Source of the DNA: Heteronotia binoei
Taxonomy: Eukaryota
Reading direction: 5' to 3'
Length of the DNA stretch: 64,000 bases
Assembly (NCBI RefSeq): GCF_032191835.1
Contig: NC_083234.1
Span: forward strand, 2,170,001 to 2,234,000
Shown here: positions 7,201 to 43,197 of the stretch, piece by piece
How the letters are laid out: each line of letters starts with the position of its first letter
Position numbering within the stretch: position 1 is the first letter of the stretch
Notes under the pieces: generated by a model
Seen by the model: only the letters and a program-made list of their open reading frames with translations
What the model was told of the DNA's origin: nothing
Databases searched by the model: none
Made by a program: the position numbers and the translations under genes

Positions 7201-10200
7201 ACAGGGGGTGTATGACACGCTGCTGGAGCTCCGCCTTCAGAGCTGGGACCACGAGCAGGACCCAAAGGTATGCCTGTGTCTGTGGAGGGGGGGGCTGGTG
7301 GGCTTCTGGCAGCATTCCTACACATCAGTGGGTGTGGAATTGGTAGCCCCCTGCAATACATGAAGCTGCCTTCTACAGAATCAGACCCTTGCGGTCCACT
7401 GAGGTCAGTCTTGTCTACTCAGACTGGCAGCTGCTCTCCAGGGTCTCAGGCAGAGGAAGAAAGGTCTTTCACATCCCCTACTTTCCAGATCCTTTTTTAG
7501 TTGGAGATGCTGCTGGAGACTGAACCTGGGACCTTTTGCAGGCTAAGCAGACGCTCTGCCACTGCGCCATGGCCCCTCCCCAAGCTCCTATCCCCCTTGT
7601 CCTGGCCACAGAGGTGCTCGCCCCCTCCCCCAACTTTGAACCTTTTTTTGTTTTGTAACAGTAGAAAAGAGCAAGAGTCCAGTAGTACCTTAAAGACTAA
7701 CAAAAGTTGCAGCAGGGGAGAAACTGTTGTGAGTCACTGCTCACCTCTTCTTCAGATACCTGTCTTTTCAAGCCACCTGCCCACCCAACCGAGGCAGTAA
7801 ACGATAACACCATTAAATGATGATAAACCTGTTCAGAATTGTGGGGTTTTTAAATTGATTACAGTATTTCTGCTTCACCTTTGTTTGTGGTTCAAGGCAG
7901 CTTGTAATAGATTTTAAAAGTTCAAGTGAAAGCCAGAAGATAACTAACCCCCGATCTTCCCCCTCCCCTCATAAGCACGTGCATGTTTGCGTGTGTGTCT
8001 GAAACAACCACGGGATGGGAGGAGGGCTTGGGGGACTCAGCGAGGGGATGCCAAGCAAAGCAAAGGAGTCCCAAGGATGACCATGAGAGAAGGTGGAAGA
8101 TGAATCTCCCTGAGGAGAAGCAAATTCTGTAACTTACGAGCCACGATTGAGAAGACCCATTCCTGGGTTGCCACTCATCCAGCTTCAGGAGGCGGAGGCA
8201 ACCAAAGCAGGGCCTCTCAAGGTGACCATAGCAGTTGGGTAGGTAAAGATGGGACTAGGCAGTGATGGCTCTATCCATACAGGGCTTTCAAGGTCAGGGG
8301 CAGCACCTTGAATTGGCAGCATAAGTGGAATAAAACTGGAGCAATAAGGTTCCTACAACCTGCTCCAGCCAGAATTCCAGCTACAGAGTTCCTGTTGTAG
8401 ATTCTGGATCCTCTTCCAGGCCAGCCCCACGTAGAATACATTGTAGCAGTCAAATCTGGATGTTTAGGCCAAGCCAGACCACTGATCCATTTTGCCGAGC
8501 ACTGTCTGGTCTGTTCGGTAGCATCTCCTCAGGTTTCAGGCATGGGGAACGGTTATCCCCAGCCCAGTACCCATGACCACGGATGGAGCCGAGCCTGGGA
8601 CTGTCTGTGTGTCAGGCCGGTGCTCCACAGTGGAGCTGAGTGTTCCTTCCCGCCCCCGTCTCCGGAGCCTGATGCTTTTGTGGCTTTGGGTTCTTGGCAG
8701 GTGAAAGAGAAGCTGCACAATGAAGCCATTTCCCTGCTGAAGAGTGGAAGGTTCCGAAGTGCCTTTGATAAGGCTCTGGTCCTCTGCCAGATGCACGGCT
8801 TCAAGGATGGCGTCTTGTACCTCTACGAACAGGGCAAGCTGTGAGTGCAGAGGGGGCGGTGGACCTTTCCCTGTGGGGGGGAGGGGCAGAGGCCTGCCTC
8901 TCACTGGTCCTCTCCCTGGCCCAGGTTCCAGCACATCATGCACTACCACATGCAGCATGAGCAGCACAGGAAGGTGGTGGAGGTCTGTGAGCTCTACGGA
9001 GACCAAGAGCCTTCCCTCTGGGAACAAGCCCTGGGCTACTTTGCCCACAAGGAGGAAGACTGCAAGGAACACATCACGGCTGTGCTCAAGCACATTGAAA
9101 CCAAGAGCCTCATGCCCCCCCTGCTCGGTGAGAGAAGGAAAGGGGCTGGGGGGGGCAGGGCCCCAATTCTGGGAGGGAGGGCAGGCAGGCAGTTGGTGGC
9201 TTCTGGGCCCTTCCACCTGGGCAGCACTAGCCCTTGCTCAGCAGCTGTGTCGAGGGGAGCTGACAAAACGGCAGTTGAAATGAGAGGTGAGGCTGGCCCT
9301 GCTCTCTCTCTCTCCCCCCCCTTTCCTGCGGGGAGCAGCTCCCCAGAGCCCAGCAGTCCCTGTGCCTGGAGGGGACTGTCTAGCCTGCCCTCGTCTGATG
9401 GCTCAGGGTGGGCAGCTTTGCTTGACCCACACAAATACCCGTGACAGGCTAGTTGCACACTGGCCCTGAGGATCAGGGCTAACACAGCCCTTCAGCTGCC
9501 GTTTGCCAGCACCGCCCCCTCCTTTGGTGCATTAATGCTCCAGCAGAACCCCCTCTTGAAGGGCTGGGTTCTAGTGCCCCACAGCAAATGGAGGCCCCGC
9601 TGGAGCACACTGAAAGCAAGGCCTGGCTACTTGTGGAGTGTGAAAGGAAGCAGCCCGGAGAGCAGCAGAAAGCCCAGGTCAGGCTCAAGATGGGCCTGGC
9701 TGCTGTTGGTGTGAGAGGCTGGGAGGTGCAGGCTGGAGCACAGAGAGGCATCTGCCAGCCTTCCCTGTTGTCTCTCCCAGTGGTGCAGACCCTGGCTCAC
9801 AACTCTACAGCCACCCTGTCCGTCATCAAGGACTACCTGGTCAGCAAGCTGCAGAAGCAGAGCCGCCAGATTGAACAGGATGAGCAGAAGATCCAGAAAT
9901 ACCGGGAGGAGACCAAGCGGATCCGCAAGGAGATCGAGGAGCTGAAGAACAGGTAGCTGCAACCCCAGCGGCAATCCTCTGGCAGCAAATTTCACATTTT
10001 AATCCTAGAATCATAAAGTTGGAAGGAATCTCTAGCCGAATTCCCTGCACAACGTAAGAAGTTCACCTTCTTCATTTCCTTCTCCATTTCAAGATCAGCC
10101 TCAGGGGTTTGATCATAAGGGTGGTCATATGGATCACCTCAACTTTCAAGAAGCCCTGAGGGCCCAGTATTTCCACCCGTATCACTTGCGTTGAAGAGTT

Positions 10201-11200
10201 AATTCCTCTTCAGTAGAGATTCCACATGTGCAGCTCTACCCCAAAGGCCAGTGTGTCTTCCTGCATCCAATGTGTTCTCTCAGCAGGCACACTGAAATTT
10301 AGAGAGTATAACGCCTACAACCACCAAATTACGTCTGAGGCGATTATGCTTGATCCGAAATGACAGCAGCTTCAGGGAGGAGGCAGCTGTTGTGGTGTAT
10401 GAACAAAAATGAACATGGGGTTGATGGAGGACAAATATTGCCAGGGCTATCAGAGAAAGGGAATTATTCACATTCTGTGCTTTTGAGGTGTGTGTGTGTT
10501 AAAAGACACATCCAGCTTGTTTGCCAATGAGCACGGTGCCCATAATTAAAACATGGGCTGGAGATTTCCGCAGTGAGGTTGTGGCTGTCTGAAATGTGTT
10601 GCTGGGGAGGTGTGCTGGCTGGTGTCTGACTACCCGGTGTGCTTCCTCCCTCCCTCCCTGCCTCAGCCCCAAGATCTTCCAGAAGACCAAGTGCAGCATC
10701 TGCACGAGCGCGCTGGAGCTGCCCTCGGTGCACTTCCTCTGCAGCCACTCCTTCCACCAGCACTGCTTCGAGAGCTACTCGGAGAGCGGCTCGGAGTGCC
10801 CGACCTGCCTGCCGGAAAACCGCAAGGTGATGGACATGATCCGGGCGCAGGAGCAGAAGCGGGACCTACATGACCAGTTCCAGCACCAGGTGTGTGTGTG
10901 TGTGGCGGGGCTGGGGTGTGGGGAGGAGGGAAGGGGGTAGGGGGCTGTGTGTGGGGGTCCCTGCCTCCCCCCCGCAGCCCCCGACTGAGGCTCTGTCCCC
11001 GTGTCCCCCTGCTGCAGCTGAAGTGCTCCAACGACGGCTTCTCGGTGGTGGCGGACCACTTCGGGCGCGGGGTCTTCAACAAGCTCACGCTGGTCACTGA
11101 CCTCCCTCCAGCGGGCCGAGCCGCCCTCCTCACTGCTGCGGGGCTGGAGGCGGGGCTGCAGCGGGACCTGCTCATCCAGCATGCCAAGCGGAGCACCTAG
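1233..11200 (+). CDS. VPS11: Vacuolar protein sorting 11 (HOPS/CORVET core subunit, RING-H2), 16 exons, 936 aa
   Basis: Exons 1233-1389, 1613-1761, 2186-2321, 2528-2691, 2799-3046, 4102-4303, 4467-4618, 5274-5460, 5838-5981, 6560-6748, 7106-7267, 8701-8840, 8925-9127, 9781-9952, 10667-10889, 11018-11200. They sum to 2811 nt with consistent phases. Peptides MAAYLQWRRFAFFD, DMEGQIWFLPRSL, MLFKKNLFEMAINLA and CSICTSALELPSVHFLCSHSFHQHC match VPS11. Confidence 0.98.
1390..1612 (+). other. U12-type AT-AC intron (VPS11 intron 1)
   Basis: 5' site ATATCCTT at 1390, branch site CCTTAAC at 1596-1602, 3' site AC at 1611-1612. Removing it gives the in-frame FGD-MEGQ junction. Confidence 0.95.
4304..4466 (+). 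other. GC-AG intron (VPS11 intron 6) with tandem CAGCAG acceptor
   Basis: GAG|GCAAGG donor is required for the conserved TKLE-MLFKK junction; there is no GT at this position. Acceptor is CAGCAG at 4461-4466. Confidence 0.85.
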
Positions 11201-11377
11201 CGCCGGGCTGTCAATCTCCCTCCCATTAAAGGGCCGCTCCTCTCTCTCTCTCTCCTTCTTGGGCGGGGCGGGGGGGCGGGGCCCTGGAGCGGAGGGGGCG
11301 GGGCCTGGGTCAGAAACGAGGCGGGAGCGGCGCCTGCGCAAAGCACCGGGGAGGAGGAAGGGGAGGCAGAGGTGCGA

Positions 11378-11423
11378 ATGCCCGCCCGCCACTCCCGCCA
11401 TGGACGCGCCGCCTGTCGTGAGT
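11378..11423 (+). pseudogene. Decayed duplicate of HMBS housekeeping exon 1, inside the VPS11 3' UTR
   Basis: ATG GAC GCG CCG CCT GTC|GTGAGT at 11400-11423 is paralogous to 23837-23860. The upstream ATG (11378) is out of frame here (22 nt spacing versus 21 in copy 2), CCAAT has become CCACT, and the donor context is GTC| rather than GCG|. Confidence 0.7.
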
Positions 11424-11823
11424 GTCCGCTTCCCCTCGCCAGGAGCGCAGCCGTGGGGCAGCCTGGGCCCTCCGAGGGGCTTGGGGGGAGGGGGCTTTCT
11501 TCCTACTCCTTGCGCAAGCTGCGGAGGGAGGCGGGGCGCACCTTGTCGGGGCGTTTGCAGAGAGCTTCGTGGTTCTGGGGGGCTGCTGCTGCTGCTTCTC
11601 CCTCCCACCCCCGGAGCCTTGGGCAGGCTTCCTCGCTTGTCCGCCCGCTTTCCCGGCGGGGCGCCTGCCCCTAGCATCGCTCTCTGCCCCCTAAGCCCGG
11701 GGGGGGGGGGGGGAGTCTGCTGAGGCACTGGGAAAGGAGCGAGGGACGCCTGCAGAACGGTGGGCCTGGCTCCCAGCAGTCAGCCTAGAGAGGGAGAAGA
11801 GTCCCGGAAATGTTGAAGCCAGA

Positions 11824-11837
11824 AATAAATAAATAAA
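11824..11837 (+). terminator. Probable VPS11 polyadenylation signal
   Basis: Three overlapping AATAAA in an (AAAT)n run, about 625 nt after the stop, followed by T-rich sequence. Confidence 0.7.
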
Positions 11838-13894
11838 TGGGAAATTTCTTGGCAGGGCTGGAATGCATGCAACACTCGCTTCCGTGCCAAACGTAAATGT
11901 TTTTTACTGATTGAACTACATGAAGCTTGTCATTTGGATCTTGCAGACTTTATTCCTGAATGAGACTTAAGTGTTTTTGAATATAATCTTGGATTGGCTT
12001 TACACTCTATTCTTTGGCTCTGCATCTCATAACACTTCATAGCCTACGTAAGCAGCGCCCTGCTTGCACCCCAGCCCAGTGGACTCTGGCAGGGTGTGGA
12101 GTCCCAGGGAACACTCCTGGATTTCCCTAACATGTCTTCTGGATAAAAGTGTGTAGTGGTTGAGGTATTAATGGGATTTAAAAGTATACATGTATGGTAA
12201 CGTATGCTGAAGCAGCATACCGAATCCCTTGGTTCATCAAAGCCAGTATTGTGCTGAAACTGGCAGCTGCAGAGTCTCAGGCAGACGTCTTGCCTGGTCC
12301 TTTTACATGGAAATGCTGCTGGGGATTGAACCTGGGACCTTCTGTGTGCCAGGCAGATGCTCTGCTGTTGAGCCCCATAGTGTCTCATCAAATAACCCTT
12401 GCTTGCTTAAGAAAAATAGTAAACATACCCAGTACTTAAAGTTGCAAACTTCTGTATACCCTGCCTTTCTCTTCAGCTGGGAACTACAGTGGCTTACATC
12501 ATGCCCCATTTTATTTTCACAACAGCCTTGTGAAGTAGGTCACGTTGAGGGAGGTGGTGAGCGCCCCCTCACTGGCAGTCTTCAAGCAGCATCTGGATGA
12601 ATACTTGTCAGGGGTTCTCTAGTCTGATTCTGCAATGAACAGGGGCTTGGACTAGACAGCCTGTTTGGCCCCTTCCCACTCTATGATTCTCTGAGCATGT
12701 GATTGGCCCAAGGTCCTGCAGTGCTCCTCAGTGGCAGAGGGGGGATTTGAACACAGGTCTTTCAGATCCTGGTCTGACTTGCTAACCATTCTGACACAAC
12801 ACTGAATTAATATTATTATTAAACATGTTATTGCATATTAATTGTTACACAATTTATTTACTTTTTCAAAAAAATGTGAAAGCATTATCTACGTCTGAAG
12901 TACAAAAGGTTCTTTCCCTTCAGTGCACCCCCCAAGTTTCATGCTGCAAGTTTTCAGTGCATGGGGCCCTGCTGCTAGAGCCTCCCTCCCCCCATTTCTT
13001 TCCCCCAGCTGAATCCTGGATGCACAATCAGTTACTCCAAGGAAGTGTGGCTGTTGAAAATGTTACAGGGCGCTGGCAGTACTGGACAGACTGTTAGTTC
13101 GATTTCCATTGAGTTTGGAAGCAGTGTGCCATTTGGCTAGCCCCCCCCCCCCCCATATGTGGGTGAAATGCCTCTTGTTTTCTTGCAAAAATGGCCCCAT
13201 TGTGAGCTGCATGCAGGCAGAAGGGTGCCTTCCTTCTCTTGACACGTTTTCCCCAGAACAATTTCTTTCTGTGCAGAACTTGGGCAGCTCCTTTCTGGCA
13301 GCGCCTGCAGCTGCGCTTCCTTCCGGGCTCAGCCCCTTTAGTCCTCTCTCCTCTTCCTTATCTCTGGCCCCACATTGGGTCTCATTTTGCAAAGAGAGGC
13401 ACTCTTGACCAGACGCGGGTTGAGTCGCTGGCAAAGACCGTGCGGAGCTGGAGATGGCAGATGCCCTGCTGTGGCTTAGTCAGGTAACAAGGGGACAGGG
13501 CTAGAGTGCCTGCCTTGCCTACAGGAGTGCTTGGGGAGCCTGCTGCCTGCCTTATTAGGTGGCTCAGGAGGAGCAGAGACTGCAGTCTCTCTCCCCCCGC
13601 ACACACACACATATACTCTGCTTTGTCATTCTTAGGGCTGTGGCTTTGCAGCAAGATGCCAGGCTACCCACTAACCATGCTCCCTGGTCCCTCTGCAAGC
13701 AGTAGCTCCCCAGGCCTTCCTTCCCTCCAACCACCTGCTTGTGGTCTCCAGTGCCGGGGATCCATCTGTGGGTGGCTGTGGGGCAGATGAGCGGGCTAGA
13801 CACCCTCCGCTCCTTTCATGTCTTTGATTCTGTGCTGGAGAGAAGGGCAGAATGTCATTCAGCTGCGTGGCACTGGGCATTATGGGGGAGCCTA

Positions 13895-14250
13895 AGAAGA
13901 ACCCAGCTGGATCAGACTAGCGAGGGCCCCTCTGGTCTCACACAGGGGCCAGCCAGTTCCTCTGGAGAGCCAACAACAGGGCAGAGAGGCCGAGGCCCTT
14001 CCCCTTATGCTGCCTCCTGGCTGTTCTGGGATTCAGAGATTAGTGCCCTTGAACATGGAGGTTCCCCCCAGTCACCACAGCTCGAGCCTCTGAGAGACGT
14101 ATCCTCCATGAATCTGTCAGATCCCCTTTTAAAGCTGTTTACTCCTGTGGCCGTCACGCCATCCTCTGGCGGAGAATTCCATGTTTTAATGACTCTGTCT
14201 GAAGTAGTAGTTTCTTTTGTTCGTCCTGAGCCTCCCGCTCATCAGCATAA
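13895..14250 (-). mobile_element. Older CR1-type LINE 3' fragment (second subfamily), duplicated at about 26968-27325
   Basis: Reverse complement of a CR1 ORF2 end ([27 protein letters not shown] in the copy-2 frame) plus the tail that also forms the 134-bp arrays. Confidence 0.7.
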
Positions 14251-14358
14251 TTTAATGTTTGGATTAATATCGCGCAAGTGGGCTCAGGGCAACTTACAAC
14301 AATAAAATCGAACAGAGTTAAAGGATATCATAAAACCAGCATTACAAAACGGAAGGGC

Positions 14359-14419
14359 ATCTTCGGCTCATCCTGTTCAATCTGGTGGCTCTGCTTCTGC
14401 AGCTTGCTGACCAGGTAGT
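14359..14419 (-). pseudogene. Inverted 61-bp fragment of VPS11 exon 14
   Basis: Reverse complement ACTACCTGGTCAGCAAGCTGCAGAAGCAGAGCCACCAGATTGAACAGGATGAGCCGAAGAT equals 9832-9892 with 2 mismatches. Confidence 0.93.
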
Positions 14420-16242
14420 ATTAGAAGTAGGAAACCAGCCAGGGAGGCAGTGGGGCCCTTGGATGACCATGGGGTAAAAGGATTACTGAAGGAGGATAGG
14501 GAAATGGCTAAGCTAAATGAATTTTTTGCCTCCGTCTTCACAGTGGAAGATGAGAACTTTTTGCCCGCCCCAGAACCACTAGTTTTGGAAGGGGTATTGA
14601 AAGACCTGAGTCAGATTGAGGTGACAAAAGAGGAGGTCCTACAACTGATAGACAAATTAAAAACTAGTAAGTCACCGGGTCCGGATGGCATACATCCGAG
14701 AGTTCTGAAAGAACTCAAAGTTGAACTTGTGGATCTTCTAACAAAAATCTGTAATCTTTCATTGAAATCTGCCTCCGTTCCTGAGGACTGGAAGGTAGCA
14801 AATGTCACCCCCATCTTTAAAAAAGGTTCCAGAGGAGACCCGGGAAATTACAGGCCAGTCAGTCTGACTTCAATACCGGGAAAGTTGGTAGAAACCATTA
14901 TCAAGGACAGAATGAGTAGGCACACTGATGAACACGGGTTATTGAGGAAGACTCAGCATGGGTTCTGCAAGGGAAGATCTTGCCTCACTAACCTGTTACA
15001 TTTCTTTGAGGGGGTGAACAAACATGTGGACAAAGGAGACCCAATAGATGTTGTTTACCTTGACTTCCAGAAAGCTTTTGATAAAGTTCCTCATCAAAGG
15101 CTCCTTAGAAAGCTTGAGAGTCATGGAGTAAAAGGACAGGTCCTCTTGTGGATCAAAAACTGGCTGAGTAATAGGAAGCAGAGAGTGAGTATAAATGGGC
15201 AGTCTTCGCAGTGGAGGACGGTAAGCAGTGGGGTGCCGCAGGGCTCGGTACTGGGTCCCATGCTCTTTAACTTGTTCATAAATGATTTAGAGTTGGGAGT
15301 GAGCAGTGAAGTGGCCAAGTTTGCGGATGACACTAAATTGTTCAGGGTGGTGAGAACCAGAGAGGATTGTGAGGAACTCCAAAGGGATCTGTTGAGGCTG
15401 GGTGAGTGGGCGTCAACGTGGCAGATGCGGTTCAATGTGGCCAAGTGCAAAGTAATGCACATTGGGGCCAAGAATCCCAGCTACAAATACAAGTTGATGG
15501 GGTGTGAACTGGCAGAGACTGACCAAGAGAGAGATCTTGGGGTCGTGGTAGATAACTCACTGAAAATGTCAAGACAGTGTGCGTTTGCAATAAAAAAGGC
15601 CAACGCCATGCTGGGAATTATTAGGAAGGGAATTGAAAACAAATCAGCCAGTATCATAATGCCCCTGTATAAATCGATGGTGCGGTCTCATTTGGAGTAC
15701 TGTGTGCAGTTCTGGTCGCCGCACCTCAAAAAGGATATTATAGCATTGGAGAAAGTCCAGAGAAGGGCAACTAGAATGATTAAAGGGCTGGAGCACTTTC
15801 CCTATGAAGAAAGGTTGAAACGCTTGGGACTCTTTAGCTTGGAGAAACGTCGACTGCGGGATGACATGATAGAGGTTTACAAGATAATGCATGGGATGGA
15901 GAAAGTAGAGAAAGAAGTACTTTTCTCCCTTTCTCACAATACAAGAACTCGTGGGCATTCGATGAAATTGCTGAGCAGACAGGTTAAAACGGATAAAAGG
16001 AAGTACTTCTTCACCCAAAGGGTGATTAACATGTGGAATTCACTGCCACAGGAGGTGGTGGCGGCCACAAGTATAGCCGCCTTCAAGAGGGGTTTAGATA
16101 AAAATATGGAGCACAGGTCCATCAGTGGCTATTAGCCACAGTGTATGTGTGTATATAAAATTTTTTGCCACTGTGTGACACAGAGTGTTGGACTTGATGG
16201 GCCGTTGGCCTGATCCAACATGGCTTCTCTTATGTTCTTATG
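14420..16242 (+). mobile_element. Young 5'-truncated CR1 LINE with open reverse-transcriptase ORF
   Basis: Uninterrupted 561-codon ORF 14450-16135 with RT motifs (PGPDGIHPRVLKE, YLDFQKAFDKV, GVPQGSVLGP, KFADDTKL). The endonuclease domain is missing. The 3' UTR ends in TTCTTATG repeats. Confidence 0.96.
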
Positions 16243-19200
16243 CTTCCTTAGATTTATACCTGCTCAGGAAGAGAATGCAAAAGGACCCCTGCAAGAAAGG
16301 CAGCAGGGCCCTCAGACACAGAGTCCACTTCTGTGGTGCTCCAATGTCTTCCCGCCAACATGCCAGCCTCCTCTGCCCCTTGCCTACCGGATATACTGCT
16401 GGATGGCCCCATCATGGTTTCCCTTGTTGTACAAATGGTCACCATACTGGCGGAAGATCTCAGAAAGCCCATCACTGTCTAGGTGGTGGCTCCTGGCCAA
16501 GTTAATGGCCATTTCAAACAGGTTTTTCTTGAAAAGCATCTGCTGAGTGGGAAAAGAAGCTGTTGATTCAGATGGCCTGCACCATACCCCTTGATAACTC
16601 CCGGTGGGGTACTGGAGTGCCAGGCCTCTGAATGGAGGTTCCAGCCCACAGCTCCTGCCAGAAGCAGCAAGCCCCAGACACTTTTGCCATGAGCCCCCTT
16701 GCCTCCAGTTTGGTCTGTGTATCCTTCTCCTGCAACGCATGGAGCTTGCCATCTCTAGTCAGCACATAGAGGCATCCCCATTCAGCCAGGACGTCTACCA
16801 CGTCATCAAAGACTGAGCTGTAAGCGATGAACTTGTTGCTGAGATCATAAACATTCAGGATTTGCTTGTCAGAATTTTGTGGGTCACCCGCAGCAAAGTC
16901 AGACCTGGAGCACAAATAAACAAGAAGGAGAGTTTCCCTACATTTCTAACCCTGACCCCCCCAAAGCCCCACAGTTCATAAGCCGTCGCAGCACAGAAGT
17001 GAGTATTTCCTCTGAAAGAACTTTCCATATCCATTGCCTGAGCAATTCTTGGTCTACTAACCTCAGCATTTCCAGGCATATGCAGCAGGCTTCTGCCCAC
17101 AGATGGGAAATCTAGACACTCCACATGCAAGACTTTGCACTTAACCTAGCAGTTTCCCATTCCTCATTCCCTGCACAATCCCCACCCCTCACATCTACCA
17201 TCTCTGCAGTGCCTGTTTGTGCCTTCTTGCCTTCAATGTCTTGATTCCCAGATCTCACTGCACTGCATGTTGTGATGACCAGTTGCTCTTACAAGTGGCA
17301 AGCTTGTTTATTATTACTGAAGCACCTAAACTCTGATTTATCAGGAGTCTTAATGACCAGCAGTAAGAACCCATTCTCAGAGATAAAGTATCAATTTTCT
17401 AATAGTACATTACTCAAAATGTTAAGTATGAACATTCTTGTATAACACCCTGCCCTTCAAAGATGTCACTCATTCCAAAAGGGGGAAAATTCAAAAGAGT
17501 TTGAAAGCCTTTTTTTGTTAAGTGCCCAGAAAAATACGCAGGAGAAAGTGTTCAAATTTTGCCATTTTGTCTCCACATCTTTACTCTCAAGAATACCTCC
17601 TTGCAGATGATTTTGGGACACCTGCTTGACCAATGACGGTCAACAGGACACCACATGAGAAAGTCATGCTGGGGCAGGCCTTCATCTTGGGATTCCTGGG
17701 GTAGATCCCATGCAACACTCCCAGGAGAAGTCGCACTGCCTGTGGACAGGGCCTTTCTCACAAGTGGCAGAAAGCCAAGAAAACTCCACCAGTTCTTACT
17801 GCTTTCTTGCCAGAAGGAACAAAATATTGGGTTCATATCCTCAGGCTCTGCGTCCAATGAGAACATGAAAAAACATAAAAAGATAGTTGGCCTCTCTCTA
17901 CCCCACTCCAGACAGGCAGTACAACAAATCTACAACAAGTCTGTCCTAAGGAGCCTTACTTTGGAGAGGTCTTCCGGTCCTTGGACACAATGACAAGGTA
18001 GCCCCGATACCAATGGGCAATAAGCTTCTGCCCCTCGAAAGCAAAACATGGCCCACGCTCATCAGGCTGATACAGATACACACACTCATCCCCTGCTACA
18101 ATAAACTGGAGGTCCTGGGAGGGGTCACTCAGGGTAGAGCAGCGCAGCCCACAGCCACGAATATCCAATTCCTGTCGCGGATAATCCTTCACAGAAAGTA
18201 TGTAGCACTATAAAGGCAACAATGAAACTCATTAGGTGGAATAATAGGTGACCCAGACTGTGCCATCTTGATCTCTTCCCCAATCAACCCAACATCGTAC
18301 CTGGATGCTCTCAGTGGTAGCAACAAACAGATGTGTTGTTTTGCCAGACTGACGGAAGGCAAGGCCGGTAACTGGATAACTGCCTTCATGAAGGGTCTGA
18401 GTCTTACTGTGCCGATCTCGTGTTATGTCTCCTTTTGTAAGCACAACGCTCCCATCTGTGAAGCCTAAGGAAGCAGAGGGAAAGAGAATACTGTATTCTC
18501 ATAGCAACCCTAGAACATCTAGTGCTCTCTATCCACAGAAAACAGTCTAAAAGTCCAATTACAGGAACATGGAAAGTGAAAGTATTGCTCAAACCCAGAA
18601 GCTTTCCCCCATACCTTTCCACTTTACTAGCACATCCTGCAGTAGAAGCACCAGCCTTGCTTCTACTTACCAATAGCCATGAAGTTCAGATTCTCATGGA
18701 CTGTGAGACAGGACACAACCGTGGGCTTGTTGCCTGGTATTGCAGGGAATATCCTAGTACACAGAGGATTCCCACCATCACGTTTCTCTAGATTCCAAAC
18801 TTTGACCTGCATAACATTACAAGGAAACTGGTTTAAGGACAGCATGTTCCCCAAGTAATTCTGTTGTACTGAAAGTTAACTGCTAGTGTCCTCAAAAGAT
18901 GACTCTTTGCTCCACCTGACAGAACCTCAGAACAAAGTTTACCTATCCAGAGGCCCCTTTTACCTAATCCTTCCTCCAAAAAGTTCAGGATGGCATCTGC
19001 CTTTTACCCCTAGAACAGTCTCTGAGGTAAGTTAAACTGAGCACCTACAACTGACTCAAGGATATCCCACCAGTTCAATGACAGAAGTGGGCTGGAACTT
19101 GGGTCTCCTGCATCCAGATCCAGCCACACCATCATGCTGCTGCTGTTGTTTGCAGCCACACTCCTTCCCCTGCAATAGCTAGTCTGTCAGGAAGAACCTG

Positions 19201-19403
19201 CAGACCCTCTACCCTCCCCAACTTACCAAAGGATTAATACCTTCTTCATCTTTCCCAAAGGAAACCAAGACGCTGTGCTGCTTCAACTGATAGAGGTGAG
19301 TCACTCTCAGCTTATAAGCCTGAAAGCTGCTGAGTTCCAGGGACCGCGGCAGGAACCATATCTGGCCTTCCATACGTAGGCTTCAGTTAAGGCCCTCTCC
19401 GGA
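16240..19403 (-). pseudogene. Inverted unprocessed partial VPS11 copy (end of intron 1 to intron 7; exons 2-7)
   Basis: Reverse complement of 1585-4769, introns included, roughly 96-98% identical by eye. No exon 1 or promoter. Exon 2 copy (19375-19227) changes D>G at its first base and SILVSVGED>SVLVSFGKD. A 14-bp deletion between CTTTAT repeats lies before the exon 5 copy. Confidence 0.96.
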
Positions 19404-22400
19404 GCCCCCGTCTGAGGCTCTGTCCCTCCGTGTGTGGGGGGGTCCCTGCCTCCACCCCCCCCCCGCAGCCCCCAACTGAGGCTCTGTGGCGCGGGAAGAG
19501 GCGGCCGGCTGGCGTCTCTCCGCTTGTGGGGGGGCTGGGGGGGTCCCTGTCTCCCCCCCGCTGCCCCCGACTGAGGCTCTGTCCCTCCGTGTGGGGGGGG
19601 CTGGGGTGTGGGGGGCTGTGTGGGGAGGTTCCTGCCTCCACCCTCCCCGCAGCCCCCGTCTGAGGCTCTGTCCCTCGTGTGGGGGGGGGCTGGGGTGTGG
19701 GGGGGTTATGTGGGGGGTCCCTGCCTCCACCCCCCCCGCAGCCCCCGTCTGAGGCTCTGTCCCTCGTGTGGGGGGGGCTGGGGTGTGGGGGGGTTATGTG
19801 GGGGGTCCCTGCCTCCAACCCCCCGCAGCCCCCGTCTGAGGCTCTGTCCCTCGTGTGGGGGGGGCTGGGGTGTGGGGGGGTTATGTGGGGGGGTCCCTGC
19901 CTCCCCCCCCCTGCCGCCCCCGACTGAGGCTCTGTCCCTCGTGTGGGGGGGGGGGCTGGGGTGTGGGGGGGCTGTGGGGGGGTCCCTTCCTCCACCCCCC
20001 CCCGCAGCCCCCGTCTGAGGCTCTGTTCCTCGTGTGTGGGGGGGGTTATGTGGGGGGTCCCTGCCTCCACCCCCCCCCCGCAGCCGTCTGAGGCTCTGTT
20101 CCTCGTGGGGGGGGCTGGGGTGTGGGGGGGTTACGTGGGGGGTCCCTGCCTCCCCCCCCCCGCCGCCCCCCGACTGAGGCTCTGTCCCTCGTGTGGGGGG
20201 GGGGCTGGGGTGTGGGGGGGTTATGTGGGGGGTCCCTGCCTCCCCCCCCGCCGCCCCCGACTGAGGCTCTGTCCCTCGTGTGGGGGGGGCTGGGGTGTGG
20301 GGGGGCTGTGGGGGGTCCCTTCCTCCACCCCCCCCCGCAGCCCCCGTCTGAGGCTCTGTTCCTCGTGTGTGGGGGGGGTTATGTGGGGGGTCCCTGCCTC
20401 CACCCCCCCCGCAGCCGTCTGAGGCTCTGTTCCTCGTGGGGGGGGGCTGGGGTGTGGGGGGGTTATGTGGGGGGTCCCTGCCTCCCCCCCCCGCCGCCCC
20501 CGACTGAGGCTCTGTCCCTCGTGTGGGGGGGGCTGGGGTGTGGGGGGGTTATGTGAGGGGTCCCTGCCTCCCCCCCCCCCCGCCGCCCCCGACTGAGGCT
20601 CTGTCCCTCGTGTAGGGGGGGCTGGGGTGTGGGGGGGCTGTGGGGGGTCCCTTCCTCCACCCCCCCGCAGCCCCCGTCTGAGGCTCTGTCCCTCGTGTGG
20701 GGGGGGCTGGGGTGTGGGGGGGGCTGTGGGGGGTCCCTTCCTCCACCCCCCCCCGCAGCCCCCGTCTGAGGCTCTGTTCCTCCTGTGTGGGGGGGTTATG
20801 TGGGGGGTCCCTGCCTCCACCCCCCTGCAGCCGTCTGAGGCTCTGTTCCTCGTGGGGGGGGGGCTGGGGTGTGGGGGGGTTATGTGGGGGGTCCCTGCCT
20901 CCCCCCCCCCGCCGCCCCCGACTGAGACTCTGTTCCTCGTGTGGGGGGGCTGTGAGGGGGGGTCCCTGCCTGCACCCCCGGCTGAGGCTCTGTCCCTCGT
21001 GTGTGGGGGGTTATGTGTGGGGTCCCTGCCTCCACTCCCCCCGCAGCCCCCGTCTGAGGCTCTGTCCCTCGTGTGGGGGGGGCTGGGGTGTGGGGGGGTT
21101 ATGTGGGGGGTCCCTGCCTCCCCCCCGCCGCCCCCGACTGAGGCTCTGTCCCTCCGTGTGGGGGGGGCTGGGGTGTGGGGGGGGCTGTGGGGGGTCCCTT
21201 CCTCCACCCCCCCGCAGCCCCCGTCTGAGGCTCTGTTCCTCGTGTGTGGGGGGGGTTATGTGGGGGGTCCCTGCCTCCACCCCCCCGCAGCCGTCTGAGG
21301 CTCTGTTCCTCGTGGGGGGGGCTGGGGTGTGGGGGGGTTATGTGGGGGGTCCCTGCCTCCCCCCCCCGCCGCCCCCGACTGAGACTCTGTTCCTCGTGTG
21401 GGGGGGCTGGGGTGGGGGGGCTGTGAGGGGGGGTCCCTGCCTGCACCCCCGGCTGAGGCTCTGTCCCTCGTGTGTGGGGGGTTATGTGTGGGGTCCCTGC
21501 CTCCACTCCCCCCGCAGCCCCCGTCTGAGGCTCTGTCCCTCGTGTGGGGGGGGCTGGGGTGTGGGGGGGTTATGTGGGGGGTCCCTGCCTCCCCCCCCGC
21601 CGCCCCCGACTGAGGCTCTGTCCCTCGTGTGGGGGGGGGCTGGGGTGTGGGGGGGTTATGTGGGGGGTCCCTGCCTCCACCCCCCCCCGCAGCCGTCTGA
21701 GGCTCTGTCCCTCGTGTGGGGGGGGCTGGGGTGTGGGGGGGTTATGTGGGGGGTCCCTGCCTCCACCCCCCCGCCGCCCCCGTCTGAGGCTCTGTCCCTC
21801 GTGTGGGGGGGGCTGGGGTGTGGGGGGGTTATGTGGGGGGTCCCTGCCTCCCCCCCCGCCGCCCCCGTCTGAGGCTCTGTCCCTCGTGTGGGGGGGGGCT
21901 GGGGTGTGGGGGGGTTATGTGGGGGGTCCCTGCCTCCCCCCCCGCCGCCCCCGTCTGAGGCTCTGTCCCTCGTGTGGGGGGGGCTGGGGTGTGGGGGGGT
22001 TATGTGGGGGGTCCCTGCCTCCCCCCCGCCGCCCCCGACTGAGGCTCTGTCCCTCCGTGTGGGGGGGGGCTGGGGTGTGGGGGGGCTGTGGGGGGTCCCT
22101 TCCTCCACCCCCCCGCAGCCCCCGTCTGAGGCTCTGTTCCTCGTGTGTGGGGGGGTTATGTGGGGGGTCCCTGCCTCCACCCCCCCGCAGCCGTCTGAGG
22201 CTCTGTTCCTCGTGGGGGGGGGCTGGGGTGTGGGGGGGTTATGTGGGGGGTCCCTGCCTCCCCCCCCCGCCGCCCCCGACTGAGACTCTGTTCCTCGTGT
22301 GGGGGGGCTGGGGTGGGGGGGCTGTGAGGGGGGGTCCCTGCCTGCACCCCCGGCTGAGGCTCTGTCCCTCGTGTGTGGGGGGTTATGTGTGGGGTCCCTG

Positions 22401-23460
22401 CCTCCACTCCCCCCGCAGCCCCCGTCTGAGGCTCTGTCCCTCGTGTGGGGGGGGCTGGGGTGTGGGGGGGTTATGTGGGGGGTCCCTGCCTCCCCCCCCG
22501 CCGCCCCCGACTGAGGCTCTGTCCCTCGTGTGGGGGGGGGCTGGGGTGTGGGGGGGTTATGTGGGGGGTCCCTGCCTCCACCCCCCCCCGCAGCCGTCTG
22601 AGGCTCTGTCCCTCGTGTGGGGGGGGCTGGGGTGTGGGGGGGTTATGTGGGGGGTCCCTGCCTCCACCCCCCCGCCGCCCCCGTCTGAGGCTCTGTCCCT
22701 CGTGTGGGGGGGGCTGGGGTGTGGGGGGGTTATGTGGGGGGTCCCTGCCTCCCCCCCCGCCGCCCCCGTCTGAGGCTCTGTCCCTCGTGTGGGGGGGGGC
22801 TGGGGTGTGGGGGGGTTATGTGGGGGGTCCCTGCCTCCCCCCCCGCCGCCCCCGTCTGAGGCTCTGTCCCTCGTGTGGGGGGGGCTGGGGTGTGGGGGGG
22901 TTATGTGGGGGGTCCCTGCCTCCCCCCCCGCCGCCCCCGACTGAGGCTCTGTCCCTCGTGTGGGGGGGGGCTGGGGTGTGGGGGGGTTATGTGGGGGGTC
23001 CCTGCCTCCACCCCCCCCCGCAGCCGTCTGAGGCTCTGTCCCTCGTGTGGGGGGGGCTGGGGTGTGGGGGGGTTATGTGGGGGGTCCCTGCCTCCCCCCC
23101 CGCCGCCCCCGTCTGAGGCTCTGTCCCTCGTGTGGGGGGGGGCTGGGGTGTGGGGGGGCTGTGTGGGGGGTCCCAGCCTCCCCCCCCGCAGCCCCCGTCT
23201 GAGGCTCTGTTCCTCGTGGGGGGGGGGGCTGGGGTGTGGGGGGGTTATGTGGGGGGTCCCAGCCTCCCCCCCCCGCCGCCCCCGACTGAGGCTCTGTCCC
23301 TCGTGTGTGTGGGGGGGGCTGGGGGGGCTGTGGGGGGGTCCCTGCCTCCCCCCCGTAGCCCCCGTCTGAGGCTCTGTCCCTCGTGTGGGGGGGCTGGGGT
23401 GGGGGGGCTGTGAGGGGGGGTCCCTGCCTGCACCCCCGTCTGAGGCTCTGTCCCCTCCCC
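19404..23460. repeat. G/C-run-rich minisatellite, unit about 85 bp (short variants about 65-70 bp), roughly 50 units, derived from VPS11 intron 15
   Basis: Consensus TGAGGCTCTGTCCCTCGTGT-G8-CT-G4-TGT-G7-TTATGT-G6-TCCCTGCCT-C8-GCCG-C5-GTC. About 1.5 units exist in the 128-bp intron 15 (10890-11017). A 901-bp higher-order repeat is visible in the ORF track (21398/22299, 21544/22445). Confidence 0.95.
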
Positions 23461-23477
23461 GTGTCCCCCTGCTGCAG

Positions 23478-23644
23478 CTGAAGTGCTCCAACGACGGCTT
23501 CTCGGTGGTGGCGGACCACTTCGGGCGCGGGGTCTTCATCAAGCTCACGCTGGTCACTGAGCGAGCCGCCCTCGTCGCTGCTGGGGGCTGGAGGCGGGGC
23601 TGCAGCGGGACCTGCTCATCCAGCTCGCCCAGCGGAGCACCCAG
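23478..23644 (+). pseudogene. Degenerate duplicate of VPS11 exon 16
   Basis: Intact CTGCAG acceptor, then LKCSNDGFSVVADHFGRGVFIKLTLVT, a 15-nt deletion, a 1-nt frameshift, and the stop TAG changed to CAG (23642-23644). Confidence 0.92.
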
Positions 23645-23836
23645 CGCCGGGCTGTCAATCTCCCCCTACTCATTAAAGGCCCGCCCCTCTCTCTCTCTCT
23701 CCTCCTTGGGCGGGGCGGGGCCTTGGAGCGGAGGGGGCGGGGCCTGGGCCGGAAACGAGGCGGGGCGGCGCCTGCGCGAAGCAGCGGGGAGGAGGAAGGG
23801 GAAGCAGAGGGGCGAATGCCGGCCGCCAATCCCGCC

Positions 23837-26800
23837 ATGGACGCGCCGCCTGCGGTGAGTGGCCGCTTCGCCTCGCCGGGAGGGAGGGAGGGAGGGAAGG
23901 CTGGGAGAGCGCCGCCGCCTTGTCTGCCCGGGGCTTCCGTTCTTCCTGCCTCCTTGTCCTGCTCGGGCAGGCAGGCGGGGCGTTTGCAGGGAGCTTCGCG
24001 GTTCTGGGGGTCTCTGCCGCCGCGTCCCCCTCCCTGGGAGCCCGGGCCCCCCTCGCCTCAGCCCGCTTTCCCTGCCCCAGCCTCGCTCTCTGCCCCCTAA
24101 GCCCGGGGGGGGGGCGCTGGGAAAGGAGCGAGGGACGCCTGCAGAACGGGGGGGGGGGGGCTGGCTCCCAGCAGTCAGCCTAGAGAGGGAGAAGAGTCCC
24201 GGAAATGTTGAAGCCAGAAATAAATAAAGAAATGGGAAATTTCTTTGCGGGGGGGGGGGGCTGAAATGCATGCAACACTCGCTTCCGTGCCAAACTTAAT
24301 TGTTTTTTACTGATTGAACTACATGAAGCTTGTCATTTGGATCTTGTTGCAGAATTTATTCCTGAATGAGACTTAAGTGTTTTTGAATATAATCTTGGAT
24401 TGGGTTTACACTCTGTTCTTTGGCTCTGCATCTCATAACACTCCATAGCCAATCTAAGCAGCGCCCTGCTTGCACCCCAGCCCAGTGGACTCTGGCAGGG
24501 CGTGGAGTCCCAGGGAACACTCCTGGATTTCCCTAACATGTCTTCTGGATAAAAGTGTGTAGTGGTTGAGGTATTAATGGGATTTAAAAGTATACATGTA
24601 CGGTAACGTATACTGAAGCAGCATACCGAATCCCTTGGTTCATCAAAGCCAGTATTGTGCTGAAACTGGCAGCTGCAGAGTCTCAGGCAGACGTCTTGCC
24701 TGGTCCTTTTACATGGAAATGCTGCTGGGGATTGAACCTGGGACCTTCTGTGTGCCAGGCAGATGCTCTGCTGTTGAGCCCCATAGTGTCTCATCAAATA
24801 TCCCTTGCTTGCTTAAGAAAAATAGTAAACATACCCAGTACTTAAAGTTGCAAACTTCTGTATACCCTGCCTTTCTCTTCAGCTGGGAACTAGAGTGGCT
24901 TACATCATGCCCCATTTTATTTTCACAACAGCCTTGTGAAGTAGGTCAGGTTGAGGGAGGTGGTGAGCGCCCCCTCACTGGCAGCCTTCAAGCAGCATCT
25001 GGATGAATACTTGTCAGGGGTTCTCTAGTCTGATTCTGTTGAGGCTGGGTGAGTGGGCGTCAACGTGGCAGATGTGGTTCAATGTGGCCAAGTGCAAAGT
25101 AATGCACATTGGGGCCAAGAATCCCAGCTACAAATACAAGTTGATGGGGTGTGAACTGGCAGAGACTGACCAAGAGAGAGATCTTGGGGTCGTGGTAGAT
25201 AACTCACTGAAAATGTCAAGACAGTGTGCGTTTGCAATAAAAAAGGCCAACGCCATGCTGGGAATTATTAGGAAGGGAATTGAAAACAAATCAGCCAGTA
25301 TCATAATGCCCCTGTATAAATCGATGGTGCGGTCTCATTTGGAGTACTGTGTGCAATTCTGGTCGCCACACCTCAAAAAGGATATTATAGCATTGGAGAA
25401 AGTCCAGAGAAGGGCAACTAGAATGATTAAAGGGCTGGAGCACTTTCCCTATGAAGAAAGGTTGAAACGCTTGGGACTCTTTAGCTTGGAGAAACGTCGA
25501 CTGCGGGGTGACATGATAGAGGTTTACAAGATAATGCACGGGATGGAGAAAGTAGAGAAAGAAGTACTTTTCTCCCTTTCTCACAATACAAGAACTCGTG
25601 GGCATTCGATGAAATTGCAGAGCAGACAGGTTAAAATGGATAAAAGGAAGTACTTCTTCACCCAAAGGGTGATTAACATGTGGAATTCACTGCCACAGGA
25701 GGTGGTGGCGGCCACAACTATAGCCACCTTCAAGAGGGGTTTAGATAAAAATATGGAGCAGAGGTCCATCATCGGCTATAAGCCACAGTGTATGTGTGTA
25801 TATAAAATTTTTGGCCACTGTGTGACACAGAGTGTTGGACTGGATGGGCCGTTGGCCTGATCCAACATGGCTTTTCTTATGTTCTTATGTTCTGCAATGA
25901 ACAGGGGCTTGGACTAGACAGCCTGCCTGGCCCCTTCCCACTCTATGATTCTCTGAGCATGTGATTGGCCCAAGGTCCTGCAGTGCTCCTCAGTGGCAGA
26001 GGGGGGATTTGAACACAGGTCTTTCAGATCCTGGTCTGACTTGCTAACCATTCTGACACAACACTGAATTAATATTATTATTAAACATGTTATTGCATAT
26101 TAATTGTTACACAATTTATTTACTTTTTCAAAAAAATGTGAAAGCATTATCTACGTCTGAAGTACAAAAGGTTCTTTCCCTTCAGTGCACCCCCCAAGTT
26201 TCATGCTACAAGTTTTCAATGCATGGGGCCCTCCCTCCATTTCTTTCCCCAGGTGGTTCAAATTCTGTACACACCTGAATCCTCGAAGCACAATCAGTTA
26301 CTCCAAGGAAATGTGGCTGTTGAAAATGTTACAGGACACTGGCAGTACTGGACAGACTGTTAGTTCGATTTCCATTGAGTTTGGAAGCAGTGTGCCATTT
26401 GGCTAGCCCCCGCTCCCCAATATGTGGGTGAAATGGCTCTTGTTTTCTTGCAAAAATGGCCCCATTGTGAGCTGCATGCAGGCAGAAGGGTGCCTTCCTT
26501 CTCTTGACACGTTTTCCCCAGAACAATTTCTTTCTGTGCAGAACTTGGGCAGCTCCTTTCTGGCAGCGCCTGCAGCTGCGCTTCCTTCCGGGCTCAGCCC
26601 CTTTAGTCCTCTCTCCTCTTCCTTATCTCTGGCCCCACATTGGGTCTCATTTTGCAAAGAGAGGCACTCTTGACCAGACGCGGGTTGAGTCGCTGGCAAA
26701 GACCGTGCGGAGCTGGAGATGGCAGATGCCCTGCTGTGGCTTAGTCAGGTAACAAGGGGACAGGGCTAGAGTGCCTGCCTTGCCTACAGGAGTGCTTGGG

Positions 26801-29800
26801 GAGCCTGCTGCCTGCCTTATTAGGTGGCTCAGGAGGAGCAGAGACTGCTGCGGGGCAGATGAGCGGGCTAGACACCCTCCGCTCCTTTCATGTCTTTGAT
26901 TCTGTGCCGGAGAGAAGGGCAGAATGTCATTCAGCTGCGTGGCACTGGGCATTATGGGGGAGCCTAAGAAGAACCCAGCTGGATCAGACTAGCGAGGGCC
27001 CCTCTGGTCTCACACAGGGGCCAGCCAGTTCCTCTGGAGAGCCGACAACAGGGCAGAGAGGCCGAGGCCCTTCCTCTGATGCTGCCCTCTGGCTGTTCTG
27101 GGATTCAGAGATCAGTGCCCTTGAACACGGAGGTTCCCCCAGTCACCACGGCTCGAGCCTCTGAGAGACGTATCCTCCATGAATCTGTCAGATCCCCTTT
27201 TAAAGCTGTTTACTCCTGTGGCCGTCACGCCATCCTCTGGCGGAGAATTCCATTTTTTAATGACTCTCTGTCTCAAGTAGTAGTTTCTTTTGTTCGTCCT
27301 GAGCCTCCCGCTCATCAGCATAATTTAATGTTTGGATTAATATCGCGCAAGTGGGCTCAGGGCAACTTACAACAGTAAAATTGAACAGAGTTAAAAGGAT
27401 ATCATAAAACCAGTATTACAAAACCAGGAGCAGCCCAATAAACCATCTTACAGACATGGGCGGCAAAAACCACCCAACAGCATGTGGCTGGTGACTGACA
27501 GCATCCCATAAACACCATAATGGTGAAATGCCCTCAGATTCTAGTATCGTGGGAGGGGGAAAAATGTCAGCGCTTGGGACCCTGGGGGTGGGGTGGAGCT
27601 TGGCTTTGGGTTCCCATTCTGCCATCAAGTTTGCTGGGGGGCTGTGAGCAGCCTGCCTCCCTCCTTCCCTCCCAGGCTTGTGGTGAGGAGTCGGGAGGAT
27701 GGGAGAGCCACACCTGCTGCTGGGAGCTGCCTGCGGAAGGGGCAGGATGAAACTTGGGAGCAGAGCCGGGGACCCAGAGGAAGCTCTTTGCTGCCAGCAG
27801 CAGGGAGTCCTGGATTCAGCACAGGAAGCGGCAGATGGAGACAGGCAGAAGGGAGGGGGGCGTTTTAGTGAATCAGCCCTCAGTGAACCTTTCCAGGTTT
27901 CCCCTCTGTGGGTCACACGGTCTGTTTCTTGCACACACACACAACGTGGGAAGGAAGGCCCTGCTCCCAGCAGACTTGCCCTTCGCTGTGCGTGGGGACT
28001 GAAGTTTCTTTTCTGCAAGTAACTGGAGGCCAACCTTTGCAGGGAGAAAATGGCTTGAAAAACCACACGATCCGCGTGGGAACAAGGAAGAGCCAGGTGA
28101 AGAATGGTTTCTCTCTCCATAAGTCTCCCCTGCGGAAGCTCAGAAGTGTGTTGAGAGAAGAGGGGGTGGGGCGGCAGGCTTGGGAAGGGAGATAATGCCC
28201 CCCCCCCCCCCCTTGCGGTGGAGAGCAACTAATCTCCATCTGCCAGCCGCTGACAGAGCAGCCCTTTCTTGAAGGGGCCTAGCCAAGGGCAGGACTCCGC
28301 TCTGGGACGAGAAGCTTTCGGCAGGGACACTTCCTGTCTCCCAGGGTTGGCTGGGGGGGCAGCATGGCCCAGGCAGAGGTCTCTGTGGGCCCCCTGGACT
28401 GGGGCGGCCTCCTTGGGAGCCTGGAGGTTTTTTGCATTCCCTGACGCTTGGTCGTTCCTTGTCTGGAATGGCAGCTGGCTCGGATCCAGACGGACAGCGT
28501 GGTGCAGATGCTGCAGGAGCGCCACCCCCACCTCTGCTTTGAGATTGGTGAGCATGGGGGGTCCTGGACGGGAGAAGCCAACCCACAGTGAGCTTGGGGG
28601 AGGGTTGGGGGGCAGAGAGCAGCACTCCTCCAGGCCCCAGCACAACCCGCAGCGCGCTGGGCCTTCTGTCTGCTGCCCTGCAAAGGGGCCGTGGCTGGAC
28701 AGGACAGCTGCCTCCCCCCCACCATACAGTCCCCTGCATCCATCCTGTTGGTGCTGGAGTGACAACCCCTCCCCACAATGTGTTTGAACAGTTGCCATGT
28801 CGACCACTGGAGACAGGATCCTGGACACAGCCCTCTCCAAGGTAAGCTCTGCCTCCCTGGGCTGGAGCTGGCTCTGCAGAAGAGCCGTCCTCGCCTCTGA
28901 CGGGCTGGCCTCTTTCCCCACTCAGATTGGAGAGAAAAGCCTCTTTACGAAGGAGCTGGAAAACGCGCTGGAGAGGAACGAGTAAGTGCCCTCATGGCCT
29001 GGCCTGGATTTTGGTGAAGTTGGCACTCACCAGAGTGGGGGTTCTTTGGTGCCAGGAGGTGGGCACTTGCAGAGCCAGGATGGGCTGTTCTGATCAAAGT
29101 TGTTGGCACAGAGGCCAGGCGGGGGGTGAGGGGGGAAGGGCCAGAGAGAGAAGCCCAATACTCACTCTCTGTGTGACCTTTTAGCAGTGGGCGTTTGTCA
29201 GGGTGTGCTCCAGCATACTGCATACTTAGTGGTTGCCGCAACAATCCTGAAAATTAGGCCATGCTGAGAATTACTTGCTCAAGGCTGCCTGGGGCTTCTT
29301 GCAATCCTGCCACCTCCTGCCCTGCTCTGATTGCAGGGTTGACTTGGTGGTCCACTCGCTGAAGGACCTGCCCACCACCCTGCCCCCGGGATTCACCATT
29401 GGCGCTGTCTGCAAGTGAGTTGGGAAGCCCTTGCTAGGCTCAACTGGGCTTGAGCCACTGGTCTCTCCCCATCCCCTGGGGGGCTGGGCTGGGCCCCTGC
29501 TGCTGTGAGCCAGGAGGACAGCGGTGGTGAGGCGGAGGGAAGGTCAAGGGAGCCCTGCTATCACTCAGCTGACCTGCTTCCCGGCTCTGCAGGAGGGAAA
29601 ACCCCCATGATGCCGTTGTCTTTCACCCCAAGCACTCTGGGAAGACTCTCGACAGCCTCCCGGACAAGAGGTGAGGTTGCTGTGCTCCTTTTCCTGTCCC
29701 AGCCCCTCTGGCCTTCCGACCAGCCAGGCAGAGGAGGCTGGTTTCTCTCCCAAGGTTCCCTTCTCGACATTCACATGCCGGTTTGCCACTGCAGCCAACC

Positions 29801-37999: not shown

Positions 38000-43197
<5,198 letters not shown>

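Follow-up and report, generated by a model that had tools for sequence, protein, structure and literature searches.

An apparent duplication-normal-inverted-duplication rearrangement between VPS11 and HMBS in the gecko Heteronotia binoei

In the human PLP1/Xq22 cohort, the rearrangement class DUP-NML-INV/DUP (duplication-normal-inverted duplication) is defined by two duplicated segments around a copy-neutral one and by two novel joints, one connecting distal with distal and the other proximal with proximal ends (PMC6902434). Replicative repair is stated to be marked by single-nucleotide variants (SNVs) and small insertions or deletions (indels) on the flanks of the junctions (PMC6902434). Here we describe an arrangement of this kind between VPS11 and HMBS in the gecko Heteronotia binoei, in a window of 64,000 nucleotides (NC_083234.1, positions 2,170,001-2,234,000; all coordinates below are counted within this window). 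The blocks are ordered X-Y-Z-inv(X)-array-Z'-HMBS, in which a proximal segment (X) is inverted between direct copies of a distal one (Z and Z'), and this topology is exactly that of the published DUP-NML-INV/DUP pattern. We assign a probability of about 0.6 to a real germline DUP-NML-INV/DUP rearrangement that arose in one event with two strand-switching joins. It is a clean case of an already known rearrangement class, not a surprise.

Block structure of the VPS11-HMBS interval

The block layout was obtained by self-BLAST of the window and by direct reading of the joints. VPS11 lies on the plus strand, with exons collinear with an outgroup contig (L033) and with Pfam matches to PEP5_VPS11_N, TPR_PEP5_VPS11, RING and VPS11_C, covering its propeller, TPR, RING and VPS11_C parts. 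Its exon 1 (1221-1410), exon 2 (1595-1767), RING exon (10646-10889) and last exon (11018-11200) serve below as landmarks. HMBS (Porphobil_deam) follows downstream on the same strand at ~28.0-33.1 kb. The features of the interval are as follows:

1585-9892, plus strand: X, the source segment, 8,308 bp of VPS11, with its ends set by joints 2 and 1
9893-10974, plus strand: Y, the single-copy ("normal") stretch, with the RING and VPS11_C Pfam matches
10975-14350, plus strand: Z, upstream copy of the distal duplicated block, with Pfam VPS11_C
14351-14358, no strand: filler GGAAGGGC of joint 1, from direct reading
14359-14418, minus strand: distal 60 bp of inverted X (X 9892-9833), a VPS11 coding-exon fragment that also matches outgroup contig L033
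14419-16242, plus strand: CR1-type long interspersed nuclear element (LINE) in inverted X, with an RVT_1 domain in an open frame
16243-19403, minus strand: proximal 3.2 kb of inverted X (X 4772-1585), VPS11 exons 2-7 without promoter and without exon 1
19404 to ~23454, plus strand: minisatellite, whose first, partial unit forms joint 2
23383-27424, plus strand: Z', downstream copy of Z, with no seam into HMBS
25039-25889, plus strand: CR1 element within Z', standing between two copies of TTCTG, its target-site duplication
13584-13774, plus strand: 191 bp of unique sequence in Z that is missing from Z'

X begins 10 bp before exon 2 and ends midway through the VPS11 exon at 9774-9946. Y contains what remains of this exon, followed by the RING-finger exon and the beginning of the last intron (128 bp); self-BLAST of the window found no second copy of Y. 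Z contains the end of the last intron, the intact last exon with its stop codon, a candidate HMBS exon 1 and ~2.9 kb of former HMBS intron 1, including a short interspersed nuclear element (SINE) at 13958-14220.

The inverted copy matches X in two pieces, 1585-4772 with 19403-16243 (3.2 kb, 1.39% substitutions) and 9892-9833 with 14359-14418 (60 bp, 2 mismatches). Z and its downstream copy match in direct orientation in three: 10916-12632 with 23383-25038, 12628-13583 with 25890-26848, and 13775-14350 with 26847-27424. All of these alignments have E = 0, indicating that the matches are not due to chance, and in the 2.63-Gb, 661-contig assembly each duplicated block has exactly two copies, both inside the window. 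As the class definition demands, X and Z are each present twice and Y once, and the two joints connect Z 14350 with X 9892 (distal-distal) and X 1585 with Z ~10975 (proximal-proximal).

A first-pass annotation of the window had proposed the order X-Y-Z-inv(X)-Z'-HMBS, with a partly deleted inverted X and an 8-bp filler at 14350/14359. Self-BLAST and joint reading bore out this layout with its coordinates, and joint reading bore out the filler; 5,060 bp (X 4773-9832) are indeed gone from the inverted copy, their place being occupied by a 1,824-bp CR1. Z' does follow inverted X in order, though not in direct adjacency, since the ~4-kb minisatellite intervenes.

Both flanking genes are intact, VPS11 on the left using the last exon of Z and the HMBS body on the right standing behind Z'. 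In Z', the VPS11 last exon has decayed, with a 15-bp and a 1-bp deletion and a change of the stop TAG to CAG. A candidate first exon of HMBS (ATGGACGCGCCGCCTG...) is kept in both Z (11400-11425) and Z' (23837-23862), each beginning with an ATG (at 11400 and 23837) and followed by a GTGAGT donor, so that joint 1 at 14350 lies within former HMBS intron 1. Just past this donor (~11441-11640 in Z), the two copies no longer align. The VPS11 last intron (10890-11017) measures 128 bp here, compared with ~690-750 bp in two distant outgroup contigs (L033:8840-9589, L037:293-986).

Assembly and number of events

Judged from features internal to the sequence, the rearrangement is probably real, and the assembly is very likely correct at this locus. 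Alternatively, divergent haplotypes or chimeric reads could have been stitched together, the true genome reading X-Y-Z-HMBS. The structure is indeed taken from the assembly and not from sequencing reads, and assemblers tend to cope poorly with sequence such as the 4-kb G-rich minisatellite, the uncertain length of which is the least secure part of the structure. However, the window contains no N and no gap, no alternative haplotig was found in the genome (2.63 Gb, 661 contigs), and an inverted copy attached at non-allelic points through an 8-bp filler is unlike a haplotype misjoin. A second haplotype would moreover have to carry a VPS11 allele lacking 5 kb of exons and having a frameshifted last exon, together with a CR1 insertion, a 191-bp deletion and 1.4-8% divergence. 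The copy-specific changes (the CR1s, the 191-bp deletion, the frameshift and the lost stop) need time in one genome and so count against an artefact, as do the lack of gaps and of other genomic copies. A misassembly thus appears highly improbable, and the first-pass argument against it from copy-specific CR1s, reciprocal indels and divergence (1.4-8%) holds on this internal evidence. An open frame across joint 2 (19310-19705, minus strand) gave no homologous protein match, in a collection that lacks the window's own frame, which makes the result uninformative.

Raw substitution divergence differs by segment, being 1.39% between X and its inverted copy, 3.35% in the distal half of Z and 7.8% in the proximal half of Z. 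Such values would suit an origin in at least two rearrangements of different age, such as the placing of an inverted VPS11 fragment downstream of Z and a later duplication of Z, or the reverse order. The mismatches are clustered, however: 27 of them at 12946-13021 represent a complex indel, and the remaining excess falls in 10916-12100, a G+C-rich CpG island containing the VPS11 last exon and 3' end, candidate HMBS exon 1 and the non-aligning intron block. Outside the CpG island and the complex indel, the differences between segments vanish, with 30 substitutions in 1967 positions for Z/Z' (1.53%) and 44 in 3158 for X and its inverted copy (1.39%; Fisher p = 0.72). The two pairs of copies are equally old. 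An older duplication of Z is ruled out, as the excess divergence is confined to the island and that one indel.

A stepwise path would also require at least three joints, one of them invisible because Z' runs seamlessly into HMBS, and is much less economical than one event; separate rearrangements are accordingly quite unlikely. A single event is favoured because there are only two novel joints, because the homology continues without a break from Z' into HMBS, and because the baseline divergence is equal. These same three features support the single-event interpretation given in the first-pass annotation. All joints lie in cis on one contig.

The joints and how they may have formed

At joint 1, the distal end of Z (...ATTACAAAAC, 14350) is followed by the filler and then by the distal end of X (9892), which falls within a coding exon. 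A search for a template of the filler gave none: this 8-mer occurs 11 times in the window, about the chance expectation, and has no longer context match anywhere. At joint 2 (19403/19404), CTCTCCGGA is directly followed by GCCCCCGTCTGAGG, connecting the proximal end of X (1585, 10 bp upstream of exon 2) to Z ~10975; the GCCCCCGTCTGAGG side is homologous to Z 10975 in the 128-bp VPS11 last intron. There is 1 bp of microhomology (A), and four of the five bases before the joint are alike. The first-pass annotation placed this joint correctly and described it as microhomeology, which is weak, a four-of-five match being expected at ~2% of random joints. The Z breakpoint is preceded, at a distance of 30-70 bp, by a strong run of G tracts, in favour of the single-event, strand-switching origin.

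In the event that we propose, DNA synthesis would have traversed VPS11 and a further 3.4 kb, as far as 14350 in HMBS intron 1, before changing to the opposite strand at X 9892 and copying VPS11 backwards to 1585. A second switch to Z ~10975, in the G-rich VPS11 last intron, would have let synthesis continue onward through Z into HMBS. The product would be X-Y-Z-inv(X)-Z'-HMBS, with an intact VPS11 on the left and an intact HMBS body on the right.

That the joins were made by replicative template switching (fork stalling and template switching/microhomology-mediated break-induced replication, FoSTeS/MMBIR) rather than by ligation of ends is plausible, at odds of roughly 2 to 1. This mechanism had been put forward in the first-pass annotation; both joints fit either template switching or end joining, so that the replicative route is not distinguished by them. 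In a single event without replication, sister-chromatid breaks would have freed X and Z, and end joining, either classical or by polymerase theta, would have inserted them where the DNA was broken at 14350. A blunt joint 1 with an 8-bp insertion of no traceable template would suit such ligation, as would a joint 2 with only 1 bp of microhomology and a neighbouring match at the ~2% chance expectation. On the other hand, three ligations would be needed, of which the one between the distal end of Z' and HMBS would have to recreate the native sequence without any change, and the outcome is a pure gain in copy number without loss at any breakpoint. Moreover, mutation clusters on the copies made after a switch, described below, are not expected from ligation. 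We therefore regard an origin by end joining as unlikely.

Two comparisons bear on these mutation clusters. In VPS11 exon 2 (173 bp, 10-183 bp from joint 2), all five differences between X and its inverted copy are derived in the inverted copy; four of the five alter the protein, and their density is ~4 times the per-lineage mean (Poisson p = 0.008, post hoc). Among polarisable Z/Z' differences in transposon-derived parts, for which two elements, the SINE (13958-14220) and a 150-bp repeat (12546-12695), served as internal outgroups, 9 of 10 are derived in Z' (p = 0.02, post hoc). Both tests were chosen after the fact and made with no close outgroup; relaxed constraint is expected to account for part of the exon result, and the gradient in Z' is confounded by the CpG island. 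The clusters are hints of error-prone synthesis, a lead and not a proof.

Within the SINE, positions 13972-14079 and 27044-27151 differ by seven transitions in 110 bp, all derived in Z', five of them from A:T to G:C. A persistently faster evolution of Z' has no support, since the differences in its CR1 are within the family range and show no A:T-to-G:C bias.

A stronger version of the replicative account holds that the locus is a fossil of a single MMBIR event in which error-prone synthesis after the switches is still visible after ~1.4% divergence. Its traces would be a gradient of mutations and indels on both sides of joint 2 (exon 2 of inverted X and the first ~1.1 kb of Z') together with the 9-to-1 excess in Z'. 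We hold this version to be doubtful. If true, hypermutation by break-induced replication would be readable in fixed structural variants of wild vertebrates. As a by-product of the same event, the 3' end of VPS11 and the HMBS 5' end that overlaps with it would have been separated into two copies, which later decayed in complementary ways.

Several observations weigh against the single-event, strand-switching origin. The divergence is uneven, reaching 6-8% in the first ~1.1 kb of Z/Z', and this part cannot be assigned to the event because it coincides with the CpG island. Far from any joint, at 3402-3551 in VPS11 intron 5, X and its inverted copy show an unexplained mismatch cluster, 12 substitutions in 200 bp with six changed bases at 3546-3551. 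The blunt joint 1 with its untemplated-looking filler and the 1-bp microhomology at joint 2 fit end joining equally well. Joint 2 is at Z 10975, but the unit of the adjoining array needs Z 10897-10974 as well, so an extra step is required: either a short further backward switch at the event or an ancestral intron with more than one unit. No orthologous locus of a close relative was present among the database homologues, the contigs found there (L032, L033-L036 and L037) being distant, with exons 74-92% identical in DNA (77-94% for the nearest contigs); these contigs helped to map the exons and to polarise exon changes, and they end no more than 1.4 kb past the VPS11 last exon and thus cannot show absence of the rearrangement. 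Finally, among public sequencing runs, none contained half of the words from 13700-19480 and 14290-14480 (the best, at 0.42, being RNA contigs; joint 1, 3/16), and the young CR1 family, together with words common to the original X, can account for these partial shares.

Later changes and comparison with known systems

After the proposed event, one CR1 would have entered inverted X with the loss of 5,060 bp and a second would have entered Z', the intron-derived ~86-bp unit at joint 2 would have expanded to ~50 copies, and Z' would have lost 191 bp while its redundant VPS11 last exon decayed.

The CR1 at 14419-16242 is 1,824 bp long and 5'-truncated, with a complete 3' end and an open reverse-transcriptase frame of 574 aa carrying the RVT_1 domain. 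It is flanked by X 9833 and X 4772, between which X 9832-4773 (5,060 bp) is missing, and has 1-3 bp of microhomology at its ends and no target-site duplication. At least 40 copies elsewhere in the genome share 99% identity with it over 1 kb, each of them matching from 14419 onward, and it has 6 private substitutions in 1,824 bp. LINE insertion-mediated deletion of the target is known for L1 (mentioned, for example, in PMC1920257), and the likeness extends to the 5' truncation, the complete 3' end, the lack of a target-site duplication, the missing target and the short microhomology at the ends. Unlike in the L1 case, the element here is a CR1 and the deleted target is a dispensable pseudogene copy. 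With the 3' end intact, no target-site duplication and the target missing, this CR1 most likely removed the 5,060 bp on inserting, after the duplication; alternatively, the inverted copy may never have held the missing 5 kb. The family to which the element belongs is very young, with at least 40 copies 99% identical, and was active after the rearrangement.

The CR1 in Z' (25039-25889, 851 bp) has the same 3' end as that in inverted X (TATGTTCTTATG). Its target-site duplication TTCTG stands at 25034-25038 and 25890-25894, with the empty site in Z at 12628-12632. It is 98% identical to its nearest relatives and differs from their majority by 8-10 changes in 850 bp, the family range being 4-10. 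That the two CR1 copies are one templated segment is ruled out by their different 5' truncation points, by the target-site duplication and empty site of one against none for the other, and by the many 98-99% relatives of each. The 150-bp stretch at 12546-12695 is an interspersed repeat with thousands of candidate genomic copies (84-87% identical), in the middle of which the Z' CR1 inserted. The gap in Z' opposite Z 13584-13774 is a 191-bp deletion, since this stretch is unique sequence, and has CTG microhomology at its ends.

The minisatellite at joint 2 consists of ~50 G-rich units of 60-95 bp (mode 85-87) with an internal higher-order repeat of 901 bp. The unit is derived from Z 10897-10993, in the VPS11 last intron, and a genome search found the array nowhere else in the genome. 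Elsewhere in the window, a 67-bp tandem repeat at 1-246 (3.7 copies) matches a region near the 3' end of CR1 copies and has a related inverted piece at 177-401, and a 134-bp tandem array at 41401-42469 (~8 units) has an inverted relative 12 kb away at 54806-55234 (82-85% identical).

For a rearrangement class that is otherwise described mostly in human patients, the locus is a compact and fully resolved natural case, and it suggests that such events can persist in the vertebrate germline when both flanking essential genes stay intact. The event left two housekeeping genes with, between them, an antisense piece of VPS11 that has no promoter, a G-rich minisatellite of 4 kb and a second promoter and first exon of HMBS, which raises the questions of which promoter HMBS uses and whether antisense VPS11 transcripts are made. 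Annotation of the locus should treat both the partial VPS11 copy in inverted orientation and the additional last exon of this gene as pseudogenic fragments.

Like the DUP-TRP/INV-DUP (duplication-inverted triplication-duplication) rearrangements at MECP2 and PLP1 (PMC4352052, PMC6902434), the proposed event has two switches of template, between which synthesis runs in the reverse direction. That class needs a pre-existing inverted repeat pair and has a triplicated, inverted middle, whereas neither a triplication nor a mediating inverted repeat is present here. The human DUP-NML-INV/DUP cases (PMC6902434) are closer: they too have a copy-neutral stretch between duplicated segments, the same joint types, a small insertion or microhomology at the joints, and substitutions or indels nearby. 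They differ in scale, their segments spanning tens of kb to megabases in contrast to 8.3, 1.1 and 3.4 kb here, and in that one of their joints is mediated by oppositely oriented LINE or Alu pairs, while neither joint of the gecko locus lies in a repeat pair. Unlike the rearrangements of human patients, that of the gecko is old (~1.4% divergence) and belongs to the germline of a reptile, where later events have overwritten it. The configuration of the segments, including their internal order, is usually ambiguous in patients and is resolved here by assembly.

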